Counted from the stretch's first letter, positions 42,972 through 54,600 are shown. The stretch: 64,000 nt of DNA from Diadema antillarum (GCF_040938485.1 NW_027272008.1:124001-188000), one strand, 5' to 3'. Notes: generated by a model from the letters alone, not told the origin. Made by a program: numbers and translations.

Positions 42972-44300
42972 AGTCAATAAAGTCAATGTTCAGCATTGTT
43001 AGATATGCAAAATGTGAACAATAGTTGTACGGTAATAAAATATTGCTTCTAGACTAAACCCTCCACAGTTATGGTATAGTGAGAAAAATAGTGATATATC
43101 CTTATATCTTAGGTTCTGTTGTAATTTTTTTGGAATGGTAGGATCTAGGATGTATTGGGATACAACTGACCTACACATATGCATCAAATGTGATAACTCG
43201 AACATTTTTTAAATCACTGTTCCCAATGGTATATGGCACTTTTAAACTTTGCAAACATGTCCACAAATAATGAGCAGAAACAAGGTCATTCGGACCAACA
43301 GGCATAATGATTTTTAAATTCACTGGGATAAGCATCTGTAATGTAATGATTATTCATGAGATACCTATAAATACTGCTTGCCAGCACATCCACCTGACAG
43401 CAAAAGTGGTATTTGGCAATATCAATAGAAAGAGATTGTCAATACATTCAATGCAAAATAATGAAATGGATGCTTCCCAAGTGTAAATTGACGGATCGTT
43501 CTGCTCATCTGGTCTACGCAACTCTATTCTTTGTTTGAACAGGATTGTGAATCCCATAAATTGTTATGTAAAGCTTATGCATTATGTCGCTCTAAAACGA
43601 GTTAAGTGCCCCTAACCGACTGAGAAAAGAGAAAGGTCATTCGTGCCAATGCGCCCATGAGCTAACTCCGAACTAGCTTATTAATCAATCACAAGTTGTT
43701 TGCTGCTCTCTACTGACTTAAATTTTGCAAAGCTGAGATTTCCCTACTCCTTGCCCGTTTTGGCTTAAACTTGCAGTGGTTAATTCGAACATATCAGACA
43801 TTTGAATAAGAATTACTTCAGATTAAGGTATTGGTTCCCTTTAATTCACTTTTTTTCTGCTTGATTGTAAAGATTTCATAGAAATTGTGTCTCTGAAATT
43901 GACAATATTTTTCGTGACTCGGCAGCCATCTTGTTTATGCAAATTACTTCCCAGCTGCGTTTGTGCATTTCCCTTTGATGCGGTTTTCGAGATTTGTACA
44001 TTTTCATTTACGTTTACATTTCCGGGCCTTTGTACTGCATCCCGGTTCCACAGACCGATCCCTGGCAACTGCCTAATGCCATGAAGTAATTTTATAGTAA
44101 ACGACAACTGCTGTTGTGAGCTGACTTGGTATTGGAAATGTTACGGTCCCACCCCCCCCCCCCCCCATCTCAAGTGGTCATCTATATATCGCATGCTCGT
44201 TCCCAATTCTTTGGAAAAGGGGTATATAAAATCCCGAAAATTCCTTCAAATATGACATCTTTCATTATTTTCCCCCGAAATATTTTCTAATTAGAAGTTT

Positions 44301-44335
<35 letters not shown>

Positions 44336-44604
44336 TCGGACGTGTCCATCTGTCGACCTGAGGGAAGGAAAGTACTGCCCGAGGTACATTATGGCACCAG
44401 GCAGGAGCTCACGTCCTCCCGGATAGCACTTTTCAAAGACAAAGAAGCAGAAGGAGGAGCGGAGCTAGATTTTGTTGTTGTTGTTGTTGCTGTTGTTGTT
44501 GTTGTTGTTGTTGTTGCTTAAATGTTTCTGTTTTGCAGCCCTTCATAATACGCCCGCCTACCAGCTGTGACGTTATTTCGCTAACTTCGCCCAGTGAGTT
44601 TTAA

Positions 44605-45385
44605 CCCTAACTTACCTGGGGGGGGGGGGGGGACATAATGCCCCCCCCCCCCCTCGACGAATTCCGCGACCATTCCGGCGCGCAAAATTTTTTGACCGCG
44701 CCACTCGCTGACTTTTTACTTTCAAGTCTCGCGCAACTTTTGAGACCAAATTTGTTGCGCCCGGGCATACCGTTCCGAAGCCACTCCCATTCAAAAATTT
44801 TTCGTCAACCCAAAATTGCTCAAAAACGTGATTTTGTGTACAAAATCAATACAAATTGTGTTTTTTCAATTAATTCATATAAAGATTCATATTTCTAATT
44901 TTAATGGCTGAAATCAATTTATATTAGTATAATTATGCTTCAAAAATGTGTATGACAAATTCTGCTGAAAAAACAACAAAAACAAAAGCTCGAAGAAACA
45001 AAGAAATATATTAAAAATTGATAAAACAATAAAAAACATAAGAAATTAATTTTGATACAGATTTTTTTTTACGCACAAATGTTCAGAATGTCACTAGGAA
45101 TTTTTACATAAAAAAATCCGCATTCCATAAGCTTTTAAAAGCCAATTACAGACGAAAATGAGGGGTTTTTTGCATATATTTGAATAATTAATTAATTTAA
45201 AATAGAAAATGCAAATCTTTTGAACATTTAACTGAATAATCTGGTAAATTACATCCGGCTTTATGTTCATGCAAAATTTTGCGGCGATCGCGTGATCAAC
45301 GGCCGAGATCTGAAGGGGGGCCATGTAATGCCCCCCCCCCCCCCCCCAGGAATTCAAGCTCGCTAAATAGCCCAGGTAAGTTAGG
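44605..45385. mobile_element. piggyBac-like non-autonomous element ~300 bp upstream of the GBA copy B start codon
   Basis: TTAA|CCCTAACTTACCTGGG ... CCCAGGTAAGTTAGG|TTAA. Confidence 0.7.
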
Positions 45386-45692: not shown

Positions 45693-48600
45693 ATGATGGA
45701 ATCGGGGAATACAGAGTCCATCAGATTTGTCTTTTATCGTATTTGTTTTCTCGTTCTTCTCTGTGCGGCCGTTCTCAAAAAGACCGGAGCTGCAAGGGAC
45801 ATCAAAGTCGGTAAGTACACATTATACGTTTTAATTGGTCCTACCTATAGGCCTACTTCCGCACATATAGAATCATTGGTGGTCGTGGAAAATGTCAGCA
45901 ACCTGTGTTTCTATGTATTCCAAATGGCTAATGGAGCAATGGAGGTAAGGCAGGGGATTCTAAAAGGGGGAGGCGCAAAGCGAGAGAGCGTATAGCGACC
46001 AAGCCCAAGTGATCGGAGTGAGCGAGGAGGAGGGTGTGGTAGGGATGTAATATATATAACACTGTTGGTCATCGTGCGATTTCATGCAGACTTTAGGTGT
46101 ACTTTTTATATTCATAANNNNNNNNNNNNNNNNNNNNNNNNNNNNNNNNNNNNNNNNNNNNNNNNNNNNNNNNNNNNNNNNNNNNNNNNNNNNNNNNNNN
46201 NNNNNNNNNNNNNNNNNNNNNNNNNNNNNNNNNNNNNNNNNNNNNNNNNNNNNNNNNNNNNNNNNNNNNNNNNNNNNNNNNNNNNNNNNNNNNNNNNNNN
46301 AAGGGGAGCGAGCCAGGTGCGCCCTTCCCCCTTGGATCCGCCACTGGTACGGTGAACACAGGGGCCCGTATTCTGCTAAAAACTTAGACCCGAGTTTAAA
46401 CCCACGCCTGGGTCTAAAGTGGGTTTTTGAGGTTTAAACCTGGGTTTAAACCACCAGTTTAGACCCAGGTTTAAACCCAAGTTTAATTTGTATTCTACTA
46501 AGTCCAGCTGTGGTCTAAATTGGGTTTAAATTAAACCTACCCAGGAGGAGGTTTATTTCGAGTTTAAATCGAGTCTAACGATGACTGGTAAGGGTACCAG
46601 CACACAGATCAATGCCAATGGCACAAAACGAGAGGCTGGCTGGATACGTACAGCAGCTAGCTTGCCGGCCACACGCGTGTACACACGAGATACGCCTACT
46701 ACATACTAGATCCAGGCTAGTACTTGTACACTTAGAAGAGACTCGAGATCTAAATGTCGTAGTTAGTCTAGACTTTACGATGAAAATAACCTGAAGACTA
46801 GACCAAGAACTCAATGCAAGACTAGAGGGTAGGTTGAGCCTGACTGAGGTCGATTTGGCATAACATGCATAGATAGACTAACGTTAACTGTTAGATCGAG
46901 AACCTAGATCGTAGGACTATTACGTTAGGAGTAGGAGTAGGGTCCTACTAACGTTAGTAGAACCTATTCGAATAGCTAGAATACATTATTGTAACGTTAG
47001 GACTAATGTTAGATCTAAAGTTAGGTTAGTGTGGTAGGTAAAATCTACTTCTAACGTTATTATCGAGACAGGGTTGATATAGTCTAGGCCTAAATTTATT
47101 TCTAAATATTTTAGAATGGTTTCCATTTTTATTAACTGACAATCTTTCTGATGCTTAAGTGCACGCCTTAACAGAAAAGCTTTTATTCAATTTCCTACCT
47201 CAAAGTCCTGGCTTGATCAATCACCAATCCATTCCGAATTCACGATTCAATCGACATAAAATTAAAAGCCATGTCCCATCCATGCAGCGCACACAGCAAC
47301 CGTGCCGCCGGCCGGCGCGGCGCGTTAAATTGGCTCTACTGAGCATTCAAAGCTAGCTAGCCAGAAATAATAGAAAGATTAAACGAGAACTTACCTGTTT
47401 GAAGTTTGATCTTTATTTCATGAGGGAGTTGGAGAAAGAATTCACAGTGAGAGAGCCCGCTCAACGCGCGCGCAGTCATACTTCGTAGCAACAAGATGTG
47501 ACTTCTGTCAGAGTGGAAAGATTGAGAACTTACTTGAAGTTGATCTATACATTTTGTAATAGTATTCATGCCATGGGAAGGGAGAGGAGGGACTGTGAAT
47601 TCTTTCTCCAACTCCCTCATAAAATAAAGATCAAACTTCAAACAGGTAAGTTCTCGTTTAATCTTTCTATTTTATTTCGTGAGTTTACGCAAGAACTCAC
47701 AGTGAGATTTTGTAGCACAGAAGTCACATTTGTTCCAACTGAACAAACTCAAGCATGCACAATGGCAAGCAAAATGTAAGCTCAAATTACCTTGGTCTGA
47801 GGTCATTATTCCCTCACAATGAGTTGTGACAGGCACTGTCCCTCTTCTTGTAGAGGTTTGTCGTAGAATTTACGGAATGTTCGTTCTTTTGACCAGCCTG
47901 CTTTTGCGAGGATCAGAGGAATAGGTGCATCCGCCCTGTTTGCTGCTGAGCTAGATGCTGCTCGGGTTGAATGTGCACTGAACATTGTGGTGTCAATGCC
48001 AGCGCCAGTCATGATTTCTTTGATCCATCGAGAAATTGTCTGTGCCGTTACTCTCTTGAAAGGCTTGCGAAAACTAATGAAGAGATGACTTTCCTCTCCT
48101 CGGATCTCTTTGGTTCTCCGAAGGTAGGCCTTAATGTATGTAACTACACACAAACGTCTGTCTGGGGGGTACGCTTTCAAAAGTACGTCCAATCCAAAAT
48201 TCCCAGGTCTAGACTGCTTAAGATGTTCATTAACTTTGAATGACACCATAGATTGTTTGAGAATCATGCTGTCTAGATTCAGGCAATGCAAAGTCTGTAC
48301 CCTCTGGGTGGATATCAAGGCCAGTAACATGCACAGCTTCATCGTTAATTGCTTCAAGCTAAGCGAGTTAGCGGGAGCTAGACTTCTCAAATATCTAAAA
48401 ACAATATTCACGTCCCAAATTTCCGAATACCGCGGCCTTGGGGGCCTGAGCTGGAACACACCTCTCATAAAACGAGAGAGAAGCGGATGAGTGCTGACAG
48501 TAAATTGTTCATCCTCTAACACTAGAAAGGTAGCAAGTGCACTCCGTGCTGAGTTAATAGCTGAATAGCTCAAGTTCTCTTCATAAAACATGTGTGTAAA

Positions 48601-51600
48601 AAACTCCAAAACAAAATTAATCTTGGCATGAAGGTGACTTTCCTTCTTAAGTGTACAAAACTTTCTCCATTTCCTTATATATGTACAATATTGTCTTTGG
48701 GTTGATGCCCTCCAAGATGCTGCCAAGATGTCCACCGTTCTGCTGCTCATGCCAGAGTTCTCGAACGGCAGCTTCAAAACCTGCAACATAACAGATCAAG
48801 GCAAGCGTGTAAAGGGTGCGGTTCCCCAGATACTGGTTGCGTAATCAAATTCCTGTGTCTAGGAATTAAGAGTGGTTCATCTTTAAGCATTCTCCTCATG
48901 CGAGGAAACCACGCTTGCGTAGGCCAGTTTGGGACAATCAAGAGACCATGTGCCTTGTCGTTTTCTATTTTTTGGAGACATTTGGGGATGAGGCAGAAAG
49001 GAGGGAATGCGTAGAAATACAGATCACCCCAATTCAGAGTGAATGCATCCACAGAAACCGCATCTGGGTCAGGCAGCCACGTAACGTACGCAGGCAGCTG
49101 CTTATTGAGTCTGGACGCGAAAAGATCAATTTGGGGAGTACCACATTTCTTAGTGATATCAGTAAAAACTTTCTTATTCAGCATCCATTCTGTTCTGTCA
49201 TTAAAATGACGAGATCTCCTGTCTGCTTCTGTATTGTCACGACCTGGTAAATAGGCTGCTGTGATCCAGATATTCCTTTCCTTACACCAAACCCAAATGT
49301 CTCGTGCTGCCCTGTCGCAGGCTCGAGATTTAATGCCTCCCATATTGTTCAGGTAGGCTACAGCTGTTGTGTTGTCAGTTCTAATGAGCACATGTGTATC
49401 ATGCAGGTGGCCGCAAAATGACTTCAAACCAAGCCCTGCAGCTAAGATTTCAAGATAGTTGATTTCATTGTTTAGAGCATGCACTATCTCCTGATCATCC
49501 CATCTACCGCCAGTTTCACTGCTTAAATCAGTGGCACCCCATCCTTGCCCACTGGCGTCAGTACGTAGCTCTAAAGCTGGCCGATCTCGACTAATTGGTG
49601 CCGACTGGCAGTGAATGTTATTGAACCACCACATTAACTCCTGTTTAGAAGCTTCAGACAAATTCATAGGTCGATCAAAATGCCCTTTGCTTGATTTTAG
49701 TGCAAGAATTTTGTCTCTTTCTAGGTTACGATAGAAGAGGGGGCCATATTGAATAGCAGGGAAAGTAGCAATCAGTTTCCCAATGACCTGCGCCACCTGC
49801 CTGATAGTAGGGTTTTGTTTCCCTAGCAATTCCGCACATACTGCCCTGATATTTTGACATTTCTCATGCGGGAGCGTTATAGTCATGCTTTCCGAATCCA
49901 AGATAAACCCCAAAAATTGGAGCCGTTGCTGAGGCTCTAGGATAGATTTCTCTGAATGAATGACAAAACCAAGGTCAGAGAGCAGTTTTGTGGTTGCTTG
50001 CACCGCTTCTAGTGCTTGTGATTCAGTTTCACCGATTATGAGAGTGTCATCTAAATACCCCACAACCAGGTGGCCTGCCTGTCGCAGCTTTGCGAACACC
50101 GGCTTCATAAGCTTTGTGAAGAGCCTAGGCGCTGTACTAAGGCCATTGGGGAGTACCTTAAATTGCCAACATTTCTCATGCCAGACAAATCTCAAATACT
50201 TGCGATATGAGGGGTGAACAGGGACAGAGTAGTAGGCATCTCGAAGGTCGATTGAGGCAAGGTAACAACCAGGGGAAATTAGGGTTGTAGCCGTATGGAT
50301 GTTATCCATTTTGAAATGCTGTACATTCAGACTGTCATTGAGGTCCGATAAATCTAAAATTAGGCGTATGTCCCCATTTTTCTTTGGGCGTGTAAAGATA
50401 TTGGACACAAATTCTCCAGCCACATGCTGGCATTCTTCGATTACGCCTTTCTCGGCCAGTTTTCGAATTTCAATGTCAATCTTGCTCTCCTCAGCATTAC
50501 CCACTCTGTAGTGGTAAGGCGGTTTACCTCTGTGAGGTGGGCTATACGCCTCTTGAAATTCAAGTTTGTAACCGCTAATTGCATCAAGTATGAAAGGATC
50601 AGTGGTAATATGATTCCACTGTTTGCTAAAATGCCTCAATCGACCCCCAACGGGCAGGTCTAATGGAACATCTACATGTTCAATGTCAAAAACTGACTGT
50701 ACAGTGTGAGTAGATTGTGTATTTCCACAACAAGAGCTAGGCCTGCAACTTACCTCCTTGGGTAGTGCAGTTACTTTCTCCGTGACACAGTGTTTGGCTT
50801 GGCTGGGGTTGCTGTCGAGTAGCTCTGCCCCCGGTTGTGCGCATGAGCTGGAGGTGGGCGAGTCTGCGTGTGCGGGGCTGAATGTCTGTATCCCCGCTGC
50901 TGCTGGCCTAAAAAAGGCCTGGATGTATCGCCAGCTGCGAGCCAGCCTGCGTTCCGATATTGCTTCCGGCTGAATCCACCGCTGGCCGTGCGCTTGTATG
51001 GGTGGTACGGCTGATGAGTAGATCTCTTAGCCTGGCCTTTAACCACACTAAAGGCAGCCCTATTCTCCTCCTTGAGATCTTTTACACGTTGTCCCAAGTC
51101 ATCACCGAATAGAAACGCGGTCACGGGCGTAGTAGGCTTGCACAGATGTGCGTAAGCAGCGTTCATATCGGGCTTGATCAGCTCCTTTCTCAGGCAATTC
51201 ATCTCGTAATTGGCATTACAGAGTAAAGCGAGTGCGTCCTGTTGCGCCTCGTTCAAGTCAGTAGGAAGAGTTTGTAGGAACGCACACAGCCCGCGGGTAA
51301 GAGATTTCTGTACTCTCTGCAGCTTAACGTCTCTGCTGCGCGTAGTCTGTGTCACATTATCCCAAATCACTGGATTGACTTTAGGGACTAGTAAGTTGGG
51401 GCAATTGCTCGGTGCTGGGTAGTTTGCCGCTGACTCTTCCATAGATTTTTCCTCCAGACAATGGGAGATGAGATAATTCGTAGAATTTGCCAATTCGTCA
51501 TTGATAGGGTCGCCCACACAGGCGGAGACCGCAAATTTTGCAGCAAAGGATGGCACTTGTACTGGCCGCCCCGTGAGCTCTGCGGGTGCGTAACCCGCTG

Positions 51601-54600
51601 CCGCCGCAGGGAAATCGCATTCATCCCCACTGTAGCTGCTGCCGCCGTGGTCGTCGTGCAGCGTACCGCGTGCTTGCGTACTATCGTCTGTAGCACACAC
51701 ATCCATGCCCCCAAACGGCACACCACCGTGGTTTTCTGCGGTACAAGCCGTGCCAACATGGCCGGCACGTAGTTGCTGTTGTTGGATACGAGTAGGCTGA
51801 GACGGCAGTATTTCCATGACCTTTTCAAACATGGATTCGAGTTTAGAAAGGCGGGAAAGCACCTCCGCGTCCGTCTTCTCTTTAGGGGGAGCTGCCTTCT
51901 TACTTAGGCCCGGTTTGGTGGGTTTTTTAAGGGTTTTCCCATTCCCTTCTTTCTTTGTTGGAGCCTTAATACTAGCCGGCGAACACTTGGGTTCATGATG
52001 CACGGCTGTAGTCACCATCGCCACGACAGACTTAGCTGTATGCAGGGCGCTCGTACTAGTGGTGCCACCCACGACAGGCTTAGCTGTATGCTGTGGGGGA
52101 GCGGAAAGCGGAATTTCCATCCCGCGATATCTCGTGAATAAAAATCCACTTCCGAAGCAAAGTCAGCTCTAACTGAGCTATAAATAATAACAATCCACAA
52201 TATGATAAGATATTGCGAAGATGCACAGTTAAAAGGACGAATAAAACTGGATTTAGACTGCGATGAGGGAACTTAGCCCCTCGTGCAAAACGTGCGAAGA
52301 AGCGATATGACTGCGCGCGCGTTGAGCGGGCTCTCTCACTGTGAGTTCTTGCGTAAACTCACGAAATAAAAATAATAGCGCTAAGCGCTACACTTACCAT
52401 GTATCCTGTGATGTGCGTCGCACACGTACACAAACTGCACAGTAATGTACAGTGCTTCACGAGTCGTCACAAGCAAAAATACGGCGGGCCCTTATTCGAC
52501 ATAATATATACCCGTAAAAACTATTCAAAATCCAAGAAAGTCACGCTCATGTGGCTGATACACTGCCAATAATAAATTTAAGTGGATTTGTGGAGAGAAA
52601 AGTACTCAGAGAGGGAGAATTTCTTCTTCCTTAGAGGGCACCATGGTGGCTTGACCCAAGACTACTTCAGGTTTAATTTAAACCCAAAATAGACTTGGGT
52701 TTAACTAAACCTCGCTAGCAGAATACAAAATTAAACCTCGGGTCTAGCTAAACCATAGGTGAGTCTAAAATGGGTTTAAACCTTGGTCTACAGTAGAATA
52801 CGGGCCACTGAATCAAGTTACGGAAGAAATTTACTCCAAAATTGAATCAATTTCGTTTAAAAAAAAGAGAAAAATATTCCTTGGAGAACGGTGAAAAAAA
52901 ATGATCAAAATCGGATGAAAAATAAGGAAATCATGACATTTTTAAATTTCAAAAATTTTCGGAAAACACTTCTTGACCAGTAAAATTAGCAAGTTGATGA
53001 AGTCATCCCTCTCATAATATCTTACTCATTTTATCTATATATACAGAAATGACAAAAATATCATATTTCAGCTGTATAAACGTAAAACTTGTCTTAAAAC
53101 CACCCAAAATAAAAAAAAGAAATTGGTATCGGAATATGCTTTTTACCTGTATTAACTAAATGTAACATTTTTCCGCATTTCATAGATAACAAACACGAAA
53201 ATAATTGTGAGGGCATGTCATCATCAGCTACGGTAGCTTATATGAATATTCATAGAGGACTGGTCAAGATAATTATGTTTTCCGAAAGAAATGTGAAATT
53301 TCAAAATGTCATATCTCCGTTATTTCTCATACGATTTTGTCAGAATTGCAACGTTCTGTAGGGATATATTTTTCTCTCTCTTTAAGAGTTTGTTTATTTT
53401 TTTTTGAGTGGTTTTCCTCTTTAAAGAGCATCCTCTTTCATATCATATTACACCATCTTTCATTTGTTATCATCCTTTGTTGAACTATAGGTTCGCCATC
53501 AGCAAAGCCATGCGTACCCAAAACCTTTCCTGGTTTCCAGGGATTTGTATGTGTCTGTAATGCCACCTATTGTGACACCGTTGCCAACTATAATCCGGTT
53601 CCAAGAGACCAGTTTGTTGTCTACACCTCTAGCAATGCATCGGACCGTCTACGCCAGCAAGTCTTCAGCACATCTAAACAGTCCAATGTAACAGGTCAAG
53701 AAAATAACTCACGTTATTTTTTGTAATCGTTAAATTATCATTTTACAAATCTTGTGTTTATACTTAATTGCAGATGAATCAGCATAGCAGCACAATTCAT
53801 ATTTGTGACATTTCTTGTCACTGTACAACTGGAATTTAATATTTAACTTGTATTCATTAGCACAAGAGCAATAAGCCAGTTTGCTGTTAGCATTGGCTTG
53901 CAATGACATCTGAACCCAGATGTTTTAAAACATGGATTAATGTTTTAAACAGATGAGCAGTTAAAAACACCTAGGCAAAAAGTGGTAGTTTAATTGTATT
54001 AGTGTTGCATGAATGGCCTTTGTTAATTTGGTTGAAAAGAATAATGTATACAATTTGACCTGTATATGCATATAGAACAGTCTCCGGACTGAAGTATGTA
54101 CCGTGCTTAAATACATGAATGAAATGAAATATAAGCCTGAAATGTTTATAACATACGATTATACTTTTCATGACAAAGGATCCAGTTCTTTAATTACCTC
54201 AGTTACAAGTCAATCTCAAGCAGTAAAATGCATCAGAGAGTCAGCAATGACCTCTATCTGTACATGTTCAGATTGTACACTGTAACCGTGAAACCGGTTT
54301 AGAGATTACAATAACTATTTTGAGAAGTTGCATCAATACAAGACCATGTTATTGTCATAGAAATGATGCCCAAATTAAGTGAGGAAACTGTGTAAGTATA
54401 TAGACCTCCATTTCCATATGATAATTATTTCACTTACACTGTGTAAGTTGTGATCACTGATTTAACGGAGAACTTTGCTCCATATTTCACATTAACTTAT
54501 AAGTATCTGAGATTAAAGTTAAAACAAGGAGGTTGCTCACCTACTATTACCTCCGTCAATGGTTGACTTAGTTAAAGGTTTCATGACAGCATGATAAAGA

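Follow-up and report, generated by a model that had tools for sequence, protein, structure and literature searches.

The window, a stretch of 64,000 nucleotides of the Diadema antillarum genome (GCF_040938485.1, NW_027272008.1:124001-188000) in whose positions all coordinates below are given, contains a single copy of a DIRS1-like retrotransposon, with no second one within its length. Read on the minus strand, the element carries gag, then a pol frame with RT, RNase H (RH) and methyltransferase-like (MT) regions, and finally a tyrosine recombinase (YR).

47364..52371, minus strand: the whole DIRS1-like tyrosine-recombinase retrotransposon, about 5.0 kb, recognized by its repeats and domains, with ends set by contigs that skip from 47363 to 52372
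52120 (ATG) to 50773-50771 (TAA), minus strand: gag open reading frame (ORF) of 449 aa, from translation; its C-terminal part is homologous to the gag of relatives
51026 to 48774, with the stop at 48776-48774, minus strand: pol frame with RT, RNase H and methyltransferase-like regions, from the open frame and domain matches
48789-47806, minus strand: tyrosine recombinase ORF with Phage_integrase and a SAM-like N-terminal domain, from the ORF and domain matches

A Pfam domain search matched RVT_1 in pol (1.6e-22) and Phage_integrase in the recombinase ORF (9.8e-9), gave no match for the gag protein, and returned neither a protease nor an rve (DDE integrase) domain in any of the element's proteins. 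The methyltransferase region, which follows RNase H, has only a weak PCIF1_WW match below the cut-off, and relatives show weak Dam matches. Both the inverted terminal repeats and the internal complementary region required of a DIRS1-like element are present (I1, 47369-47448/47592-47671; I2, 47426-47480/52306-52360; I4, 47670-47707/52334-52371). The combination of an RT/RH pol with a tyrosine recombinase, instead of a DDE integrase, and the lack of a protease mark the element as DIRS1-like. Its exact ends are obscured by AATAATAG microhomology at the two junctions of the empty site (47360-47369 / 52372-52398).

Contigs from two sequencing runs (X5 and X7) skip the entire 5-kb element, passing from 47363 to 52372 with a short AGAAT-like filler, and the flanks of the element are unique within the window; these contigs suggest an empty-site allele, that is, an insertion polymorphism and hence a recent insertion. 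All ORFs and terminal repeats are intact, and the Pol encoded by a metagenome scaffold (L001) shares 99% identity with that of the window. The copy could in principle be a silent relic, in which the slippery heptamer described below sits at this locus with no present function. This is very unlikely given the three intact ORFs and terminal repeats, the near-identical copies and the contigs that lack the insertion, and even a silent copy would bear the functional signal of its family. The window element is likely an active copy.

Other repeats lie nearby. Short TTTAAACCC-type direct and inverted repeats flank the element at 46384-46540 and 52669-52790 (D2, D3, I8, I12 and I16) and may represent another repeat family, or a small element that hosts the DIRS insertion. 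At 44141-44667 and 45315-45358, inverted repeats are built from long homopolymer tracts of G and C (D1, D4, I6, I7, I10 and I14).

How might such an element express its Pol? The pol frame opens inside gag, and the stretch over which the two frames coincide holds the features on which our interpretation turns.

50771..51026, minus strand: gag/pol overlap of 253-256 nt, with pol in the -1 frame relative to gag, from the open frames
50909..50915, minus strand: slippery heptamer U UUU UUA in gag phase (CCU UUU UUA), followed by GGC, from the sequence and from the phase kept in relatives
50898..50908, minus strand: spacer of 11 nt, GGCCAGCAGCA, from the sequence and fold
50897-50892 / 50877-50872, minus strand: candidate stimulatory hairpin with a 6-bp all-GC stem and a 14-nt loop, part of the minimum-free-energy (MFE) fold

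The gag stop codon, TAA at 50773-50771, places codon starts at 50917, 50914 and 50911, so that gag reads CCT TTT TTA, in X XXY YYZ phase. This heptamer is the sole in-phase XXXYYYZ site in the entire gag that faces an open -1 frame. The first ATG of the pol frame comes only at 50309-50307, within the conserved RT motif HFKMD. An initial annotation of this DNA had described the same anatomy, namely a pol frame open from 51026 that overlaps gag by about 255 nt in the -1 frame, no pol ATG until 50309, already inside RT, and a gag codon series CCT TTT TTA in XXXYYYZ phase; frame translation and a reading of 50917-50909 on the minus strand agree with it on every count. It had gone on to propose that Pol is made as a Gag-transframe-Pol fusion of about 1,100 aa by -1 programmed ribosomal frameshifting, and had named conservation of the heptamer and of its phase in relatives as a check on this proposal. 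Because in-phase slippery heptamers also arise by chance, a single element is not compelling, and the weight of the argument falls on that comparison.

A protein search with Pol returned hundreds of relatives, from which we took 95 related loci (15 through exact-protein look-ups and 80 metagenome contigs) with 40-99% Pol identity, including genome loci of the sea cucumber Holothuria leucospilota and the brittle star Amphiura filiformis; a scan of viral contigs produced no relatives of the element. The metagenomic relatives are not assigned to a host and some are perhaps close kin, yet the branches of the tree are long, at 0.2-1.3 changes per site. Restricted to loci whose gag spans 250 codons or more, the set gave 41 distinct gag/pol overlap sequences, 34-253 nt long, and in all of them pol is in the -1 frame relative to gag. 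A canonical slippery heptamer in the phase of gag occurs in 39 of the 41, which come from elements with 40-63% Pol identity and include copies from the Holothuria and Amphiura genomes: 25 have U UUU UUA, 17 of them with GGN directly after it, 12 have A AAA AAC and 2 have U UUU UUG. In-phase sites reach a density of 7.2 per kb in the overlaps. In the remainder of gag or pol, heptamers of any phase number 0.11-0.15 per kb, which makes the enrichment over background about 55-fold, and only 2 out-of-phase heptamers occur within the overlaps.

The Pol tree implies at least four (4-6) changes of heptamer type, each yielding a different canonical slippery site, as illustrated by the sister pair L011, with A AAA AAC (A6C), and L015, with U UUU UUA (U6A). 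The flanks of the heptamer cannot be aligned, and an alignment of nine relatives conserves only TTTTTTAGG. The two overlaps that lack a usable heptamer seem to belong to decayed copies: in L091 a stop lies behind an A AAA AAC that is still in phase, and in L082 the T run is shortened. In a further locus, L049, the pol frame is apparently +1, yet an in-phase U UUU UUG lies upstream of an apparent indel. One clade of relatives (L012, L013, L029, L042, L047 and L057) encodes gag and pol as one ORF, about 1,150 aa long, that lacks the heptamer, a fusion with a single origin on the Pol tree (support 100); frameshifting is therefore not obligatory for the DIRS order, and the strategy can be replaced. 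Overall, the comparative pattern carries the classical signatures of -1 programmed ribosomal frameshifting and strongly supports this mechanism, and the check named in the initial annotation thus speaks for its proposal.

Could the heptamer instead be conserved for the peptide that it encodes? Pol would then be translated independently, through non-AUG initiation, reinitiation, shunting or internal entry, and the heptamer kept merely as the Gag peptide motif RPFLG. P-F-L-G is indeed common in the U6A group, and 16 of the 41 elements have a pol-frame ATG upstream of RT. The positions of these ATGs are unrelated to one another, however, and the window element and 24 others have none. Nor does the peptide account for the codons, since TTC, CTN or TTG would be tolerated under selection on Phe-Leu, yet the TTT-TTA pair is found in 25 of 25 U6A elements, in gag genes where Phe is encoded by TTT in 62% of cases and Leu by TTA in only 14%. 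Such invariance despite the codon usage of gag argues for a constraint on RNA rather than on the P-F-L-G peptide, and the A6C group, which swaps the peptide for K-N, still has a slippery site in phase. We consider an independent start of Pol highly improbable.

Slippage of the polymerase rather than the ribosome would act on the same bases: if Pol II added a U on the T6 run, or an A on the A6 run of relatives, a minority of mRNAs would have gag and pol in frame. The conserved core is a homopolymer of six, and insertion of one base yields the same change of frame. Polymerase slippage requires neither codon phase nor a specific seventh base, whereas here codon phase is respected by 39 sites and broken by 2, and the base that closes the heptamer obeys the rules of tRNA slippage, with A after U6 and C after A6. 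Six-base runs are also short for slippage by eukaryotic polymerases. None of 24 sequencing runs is recorded as RNA. DNA-like contigs of four runs, at low depth, show no variants and no variation in run length at the heptamer of the window element, an observation that is uninformative on RNA, and display neither transcript ends nor splice joints. We give very little credence to a transcriptional origin of the frame change.

Gene models from Amphiura raise one more alternative. Two of them (XP_072032829.1 and XP_072043497.1) join the C-terminus of gag to the -1 frame, including its FFRE motif, and then, through a GT..AG intron about 1.9 kb long, to the recombinase, and both bridge the frameshift itself by mini-introns upstream of the heptamer (L094:6260-6330, CM076860.1, and the XP_072043497.1 locus). 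Since gene predictors cannot model frameshifting, these bridges are most simply explained, and probably are, annotation artefacts of an unmodelled frameshift. That a small intron upstream of or across the overlap truly moves gag into the pol frame is the least likely of the readings considered here, as the two models that imply it use different bridges, both still include FFRE, the transframe motif that lies past the heptamer, no conserved signals of a small intron were seen, and the conservation of the heptamer would be left unexplained.

We put at about 85% the probability that the window element is an intact, recently inserted DIRS1-like retrotransposon that makes its RT polyprotein by -1 programmed ribosomal frameshifting. 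What the analysis shows is the anatomy of the overlap and the deep in-phase conservation of the heptamer across the clade; slippage itself, and any efficiency it has, is our inference. Ribosomes translating gag would reach CCU UUU UUA (50917-50909), where a fraction of them would slip back by one base on U UUU UUA and enter the pol frame, while the remaining ribosomes would stop at the gag stop codon, 46 codons past the slip site. Slippage after decoding of UUA would join Gag residues 1-404 to 711 pol-frame codons in a protein of 1,115 aa, and tandem slippage after UUA decoding gives the type of junction found in the major HIV-1 product. The transframe peptide offered in the initial annotation, FFRPAAAG..., is a plain translation of the -1 frame; the junction to be expected is mostly ...SRPFL-RPAAAG.... 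As no protease domain was found, the Gag-Pol fusion would probably stay uncleaved.

A GC-rich hairpin that begins 11 nt downstream of the heptamer may pause the ribosome. Its two arms, GCGGGG (50897-50892) and CCCCGC (50877-50872), are perfectly complementary and form the only all-GC stem of at least 6 bp nearby, and the stem pointed out in the initial annotation does appear in the minimum-free-energy fold. The stem region of the window element has a z of -1.8, with 8-11 of 200 shuffles folding equally well. Across 39 elements, the 70 nt after the heptamer are more stable than dinucleotide shuffles (mean z -1.28, p about 1e-7), whereas the 70 nt before it have a mean z of -0.34 (downstream versus upstream, paired Wilcoxon p 4e-4). 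GC-rich hairpins of 6-10 bp begin 5-11 nt downstream of the heptamer in many relatives, and in several of these the stem starts at 10-11 nt, so that the 11-nt spacer, which the initial annotation had noted as longer than the usual 5-9 nt, is not unusual in this set.

Stems in relatives vary in both sequence and position and defy alignment. RNAalifold applied to nine heptamer-anchored relatives, too diverged for a covariation test, found no shared pair, consensus or covariation, and L001, the only close relative, is identical in this region. A scan of the window element gave no partner for an H-type pseudoknot, and the Rfam frameshift families, including the HIV frameshift element, gave no covariance-model match at E values up to 10. 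A stimulatory structure is plausible as a property of these elements as a class, and the stem of the window element may, tentatively, be taken as a candidate stimulator.

The proposed signal closely resembles that of HIV-1 gag-pol. Both have U UUU UUA followed by GG, in the phase of the 0 frame, within a gag/pol overlap of about 200 nt; in both the downstream ORF lacks a start codon, and a GC-rich stem-loop follows the heptamer. In two relatives (L066 and L081) the slip site is UUUUUUAGGGAAG (also TTTTTTAGGGAAG), which we take to be identical to that of HIV-1 over 13 nt. The HIV-1 stem begins about 8 nt from the heptamer, whereas the stem of the window element begins at 11 nt, encloses a 14-nt loop and is not conserved. 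The window element also differs from HIV-1 in that it encodes no protease and in that the host of the signal is a tyrosine-recombinase retrotransposon rather than a retrovirus.

A further parallel comes from LTR retrotransposons. Frameshifting by -1 between gag and pol is known in Ty3/gypsy-type LTR retrotransposons, and A AAA AAC sites are used by retroviruses such as MMTV and HTLV. The DIRS relatives share with these groups a related RT/RH lineage, a -1 gag-pol overlap and heptamers of both the U6A and the A6C type; unlike Ty3/gypsy-type elements, DIRS elements lack LTRs, a protease and a DDE integrase. The mechanism itself is therefore a known one, textbook material for retroviruses and LTR retrotransposons, and we found no description of it for the DIRS order: the searchable literature yielded no published slippery site for DIRS, Ngaro, PAT or VIPER elements, although older papers may mention frameshifting, and reviews of DIRS elements and the open literature state only that the ORFs overlap.

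Frameshifting at the heptamer would provide RT, RNase H and the methyltransferase-like region. Another puzzle is the expression of the recombinase, for which the window element offers a pair of putative splice signals.

50745..50757, minus strand: putative 5' splice site AAGGAG/GTAAGT, which would end the exon at 50754, on a whole codon of the pol frame, from the sequence and relatives
48781..48802, minus strand: putative 3' splice site, a pyrimidine tract ending in TTGCAG/G, from which exon 2 would begin at 48780, in frame with YR, from the sequence

With this donor-like motif the exon would end 17 nt past the gag stop, and excision of 50753-48781 would fuse the recombinase in phase to the -1 frame. 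A GT at phase 0 of the pol frame, 5-44 nt after the gag stop, is present in nearly all relatives. A Ser codon after the donor GT is AGY in every case, with no instance of TCN, a bias that speaks for selection on GTRAGY. The TTGCAG/ acceptor is found in the clade of the window element and in the Amphiura gene model as well. The best donor and acceptor are compatible in phase in 27 of 41 loci, against one third expected, a rough figure from a crude splice-site scorer that picks the wrong GT in a few loci (L080, L045 and the fused gag-pol clade).

One further contig, L095 (a Logan contig from SRR26945560), represents a related element and lacks pol altogether. It includes the 3' region of gag as well as U UUU UUG, in phase, at exactly the point where the -1 frame opens, a TGA in the -1 frame lying directly before T TTT TTG (L095:700-800). 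The junction of L095 lies 8 nt beyond the stop codon of gag, past which the -1 frame stays open all the way into the recombinase; the far side of this junction corresponds, in the closest unspliced relative, to a position just behind a pyrimidine tract and TAG at an FPPF motif. L095 may be spliced RNA or a retro-copied DNA.

These signals raise the possibility, to which we give even odds, that one slip site serves two fusions, with unspliced RNA yielding Gag-RT/RH/MT and RNA spliced at 50754^48780 yielding Gag-recombinase. Both gag and the slip site would survive splicing, and in the window element the same -1 frameshift would then give a Gag-recombinase of about 780 aa. Retroviruses use subgenomic splicing for env mRNA, and foamy viruses for a spliced pol mRNA. 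An internal intron in DIRS elements would likewise provide a second mRNA from one promoter to express a downstream gene. Unlike in retroviral splicing, the spliced DIRS RNA would retain gag together with the slip site, leaving the -1 frameshift as the only route to the recombinase. We know of no other system that combines splicing with a shared -1 frameshift to reach a recombinase, and this combination, hypothesized here from sequence signals, would be the more novel part of the model.

If the slip site does have this dual use, it would explain how the recombinase is expressed from a 5-kb RNA in a DIRS clade that lacks a protease, and how both enzymes are delivered to Gag particles. The Gag-recombinase route would also explain the long ATG-less recombinase frames that have been reported for DIRS1-like elements. 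Should splicing hold, recoding and splicing would together set the ratios of three proteins made from one promoter.

DIRS elements occur widely among animals, fungi and protists, and the expression of their Pol and recombinase has so far been left at the statement that the ORFs overlap. Gene predictors now probably bridge the DIRS frameshift with invented introns, as in the Amphiura models, and the heptamer offers a simple marker of intact, probably active DIRS copies. A heptamer locked in phase supplies a concrete and testable mechanism of expression, and would bring this order of retrotransposons under the gag-pol logic of retroviruses.
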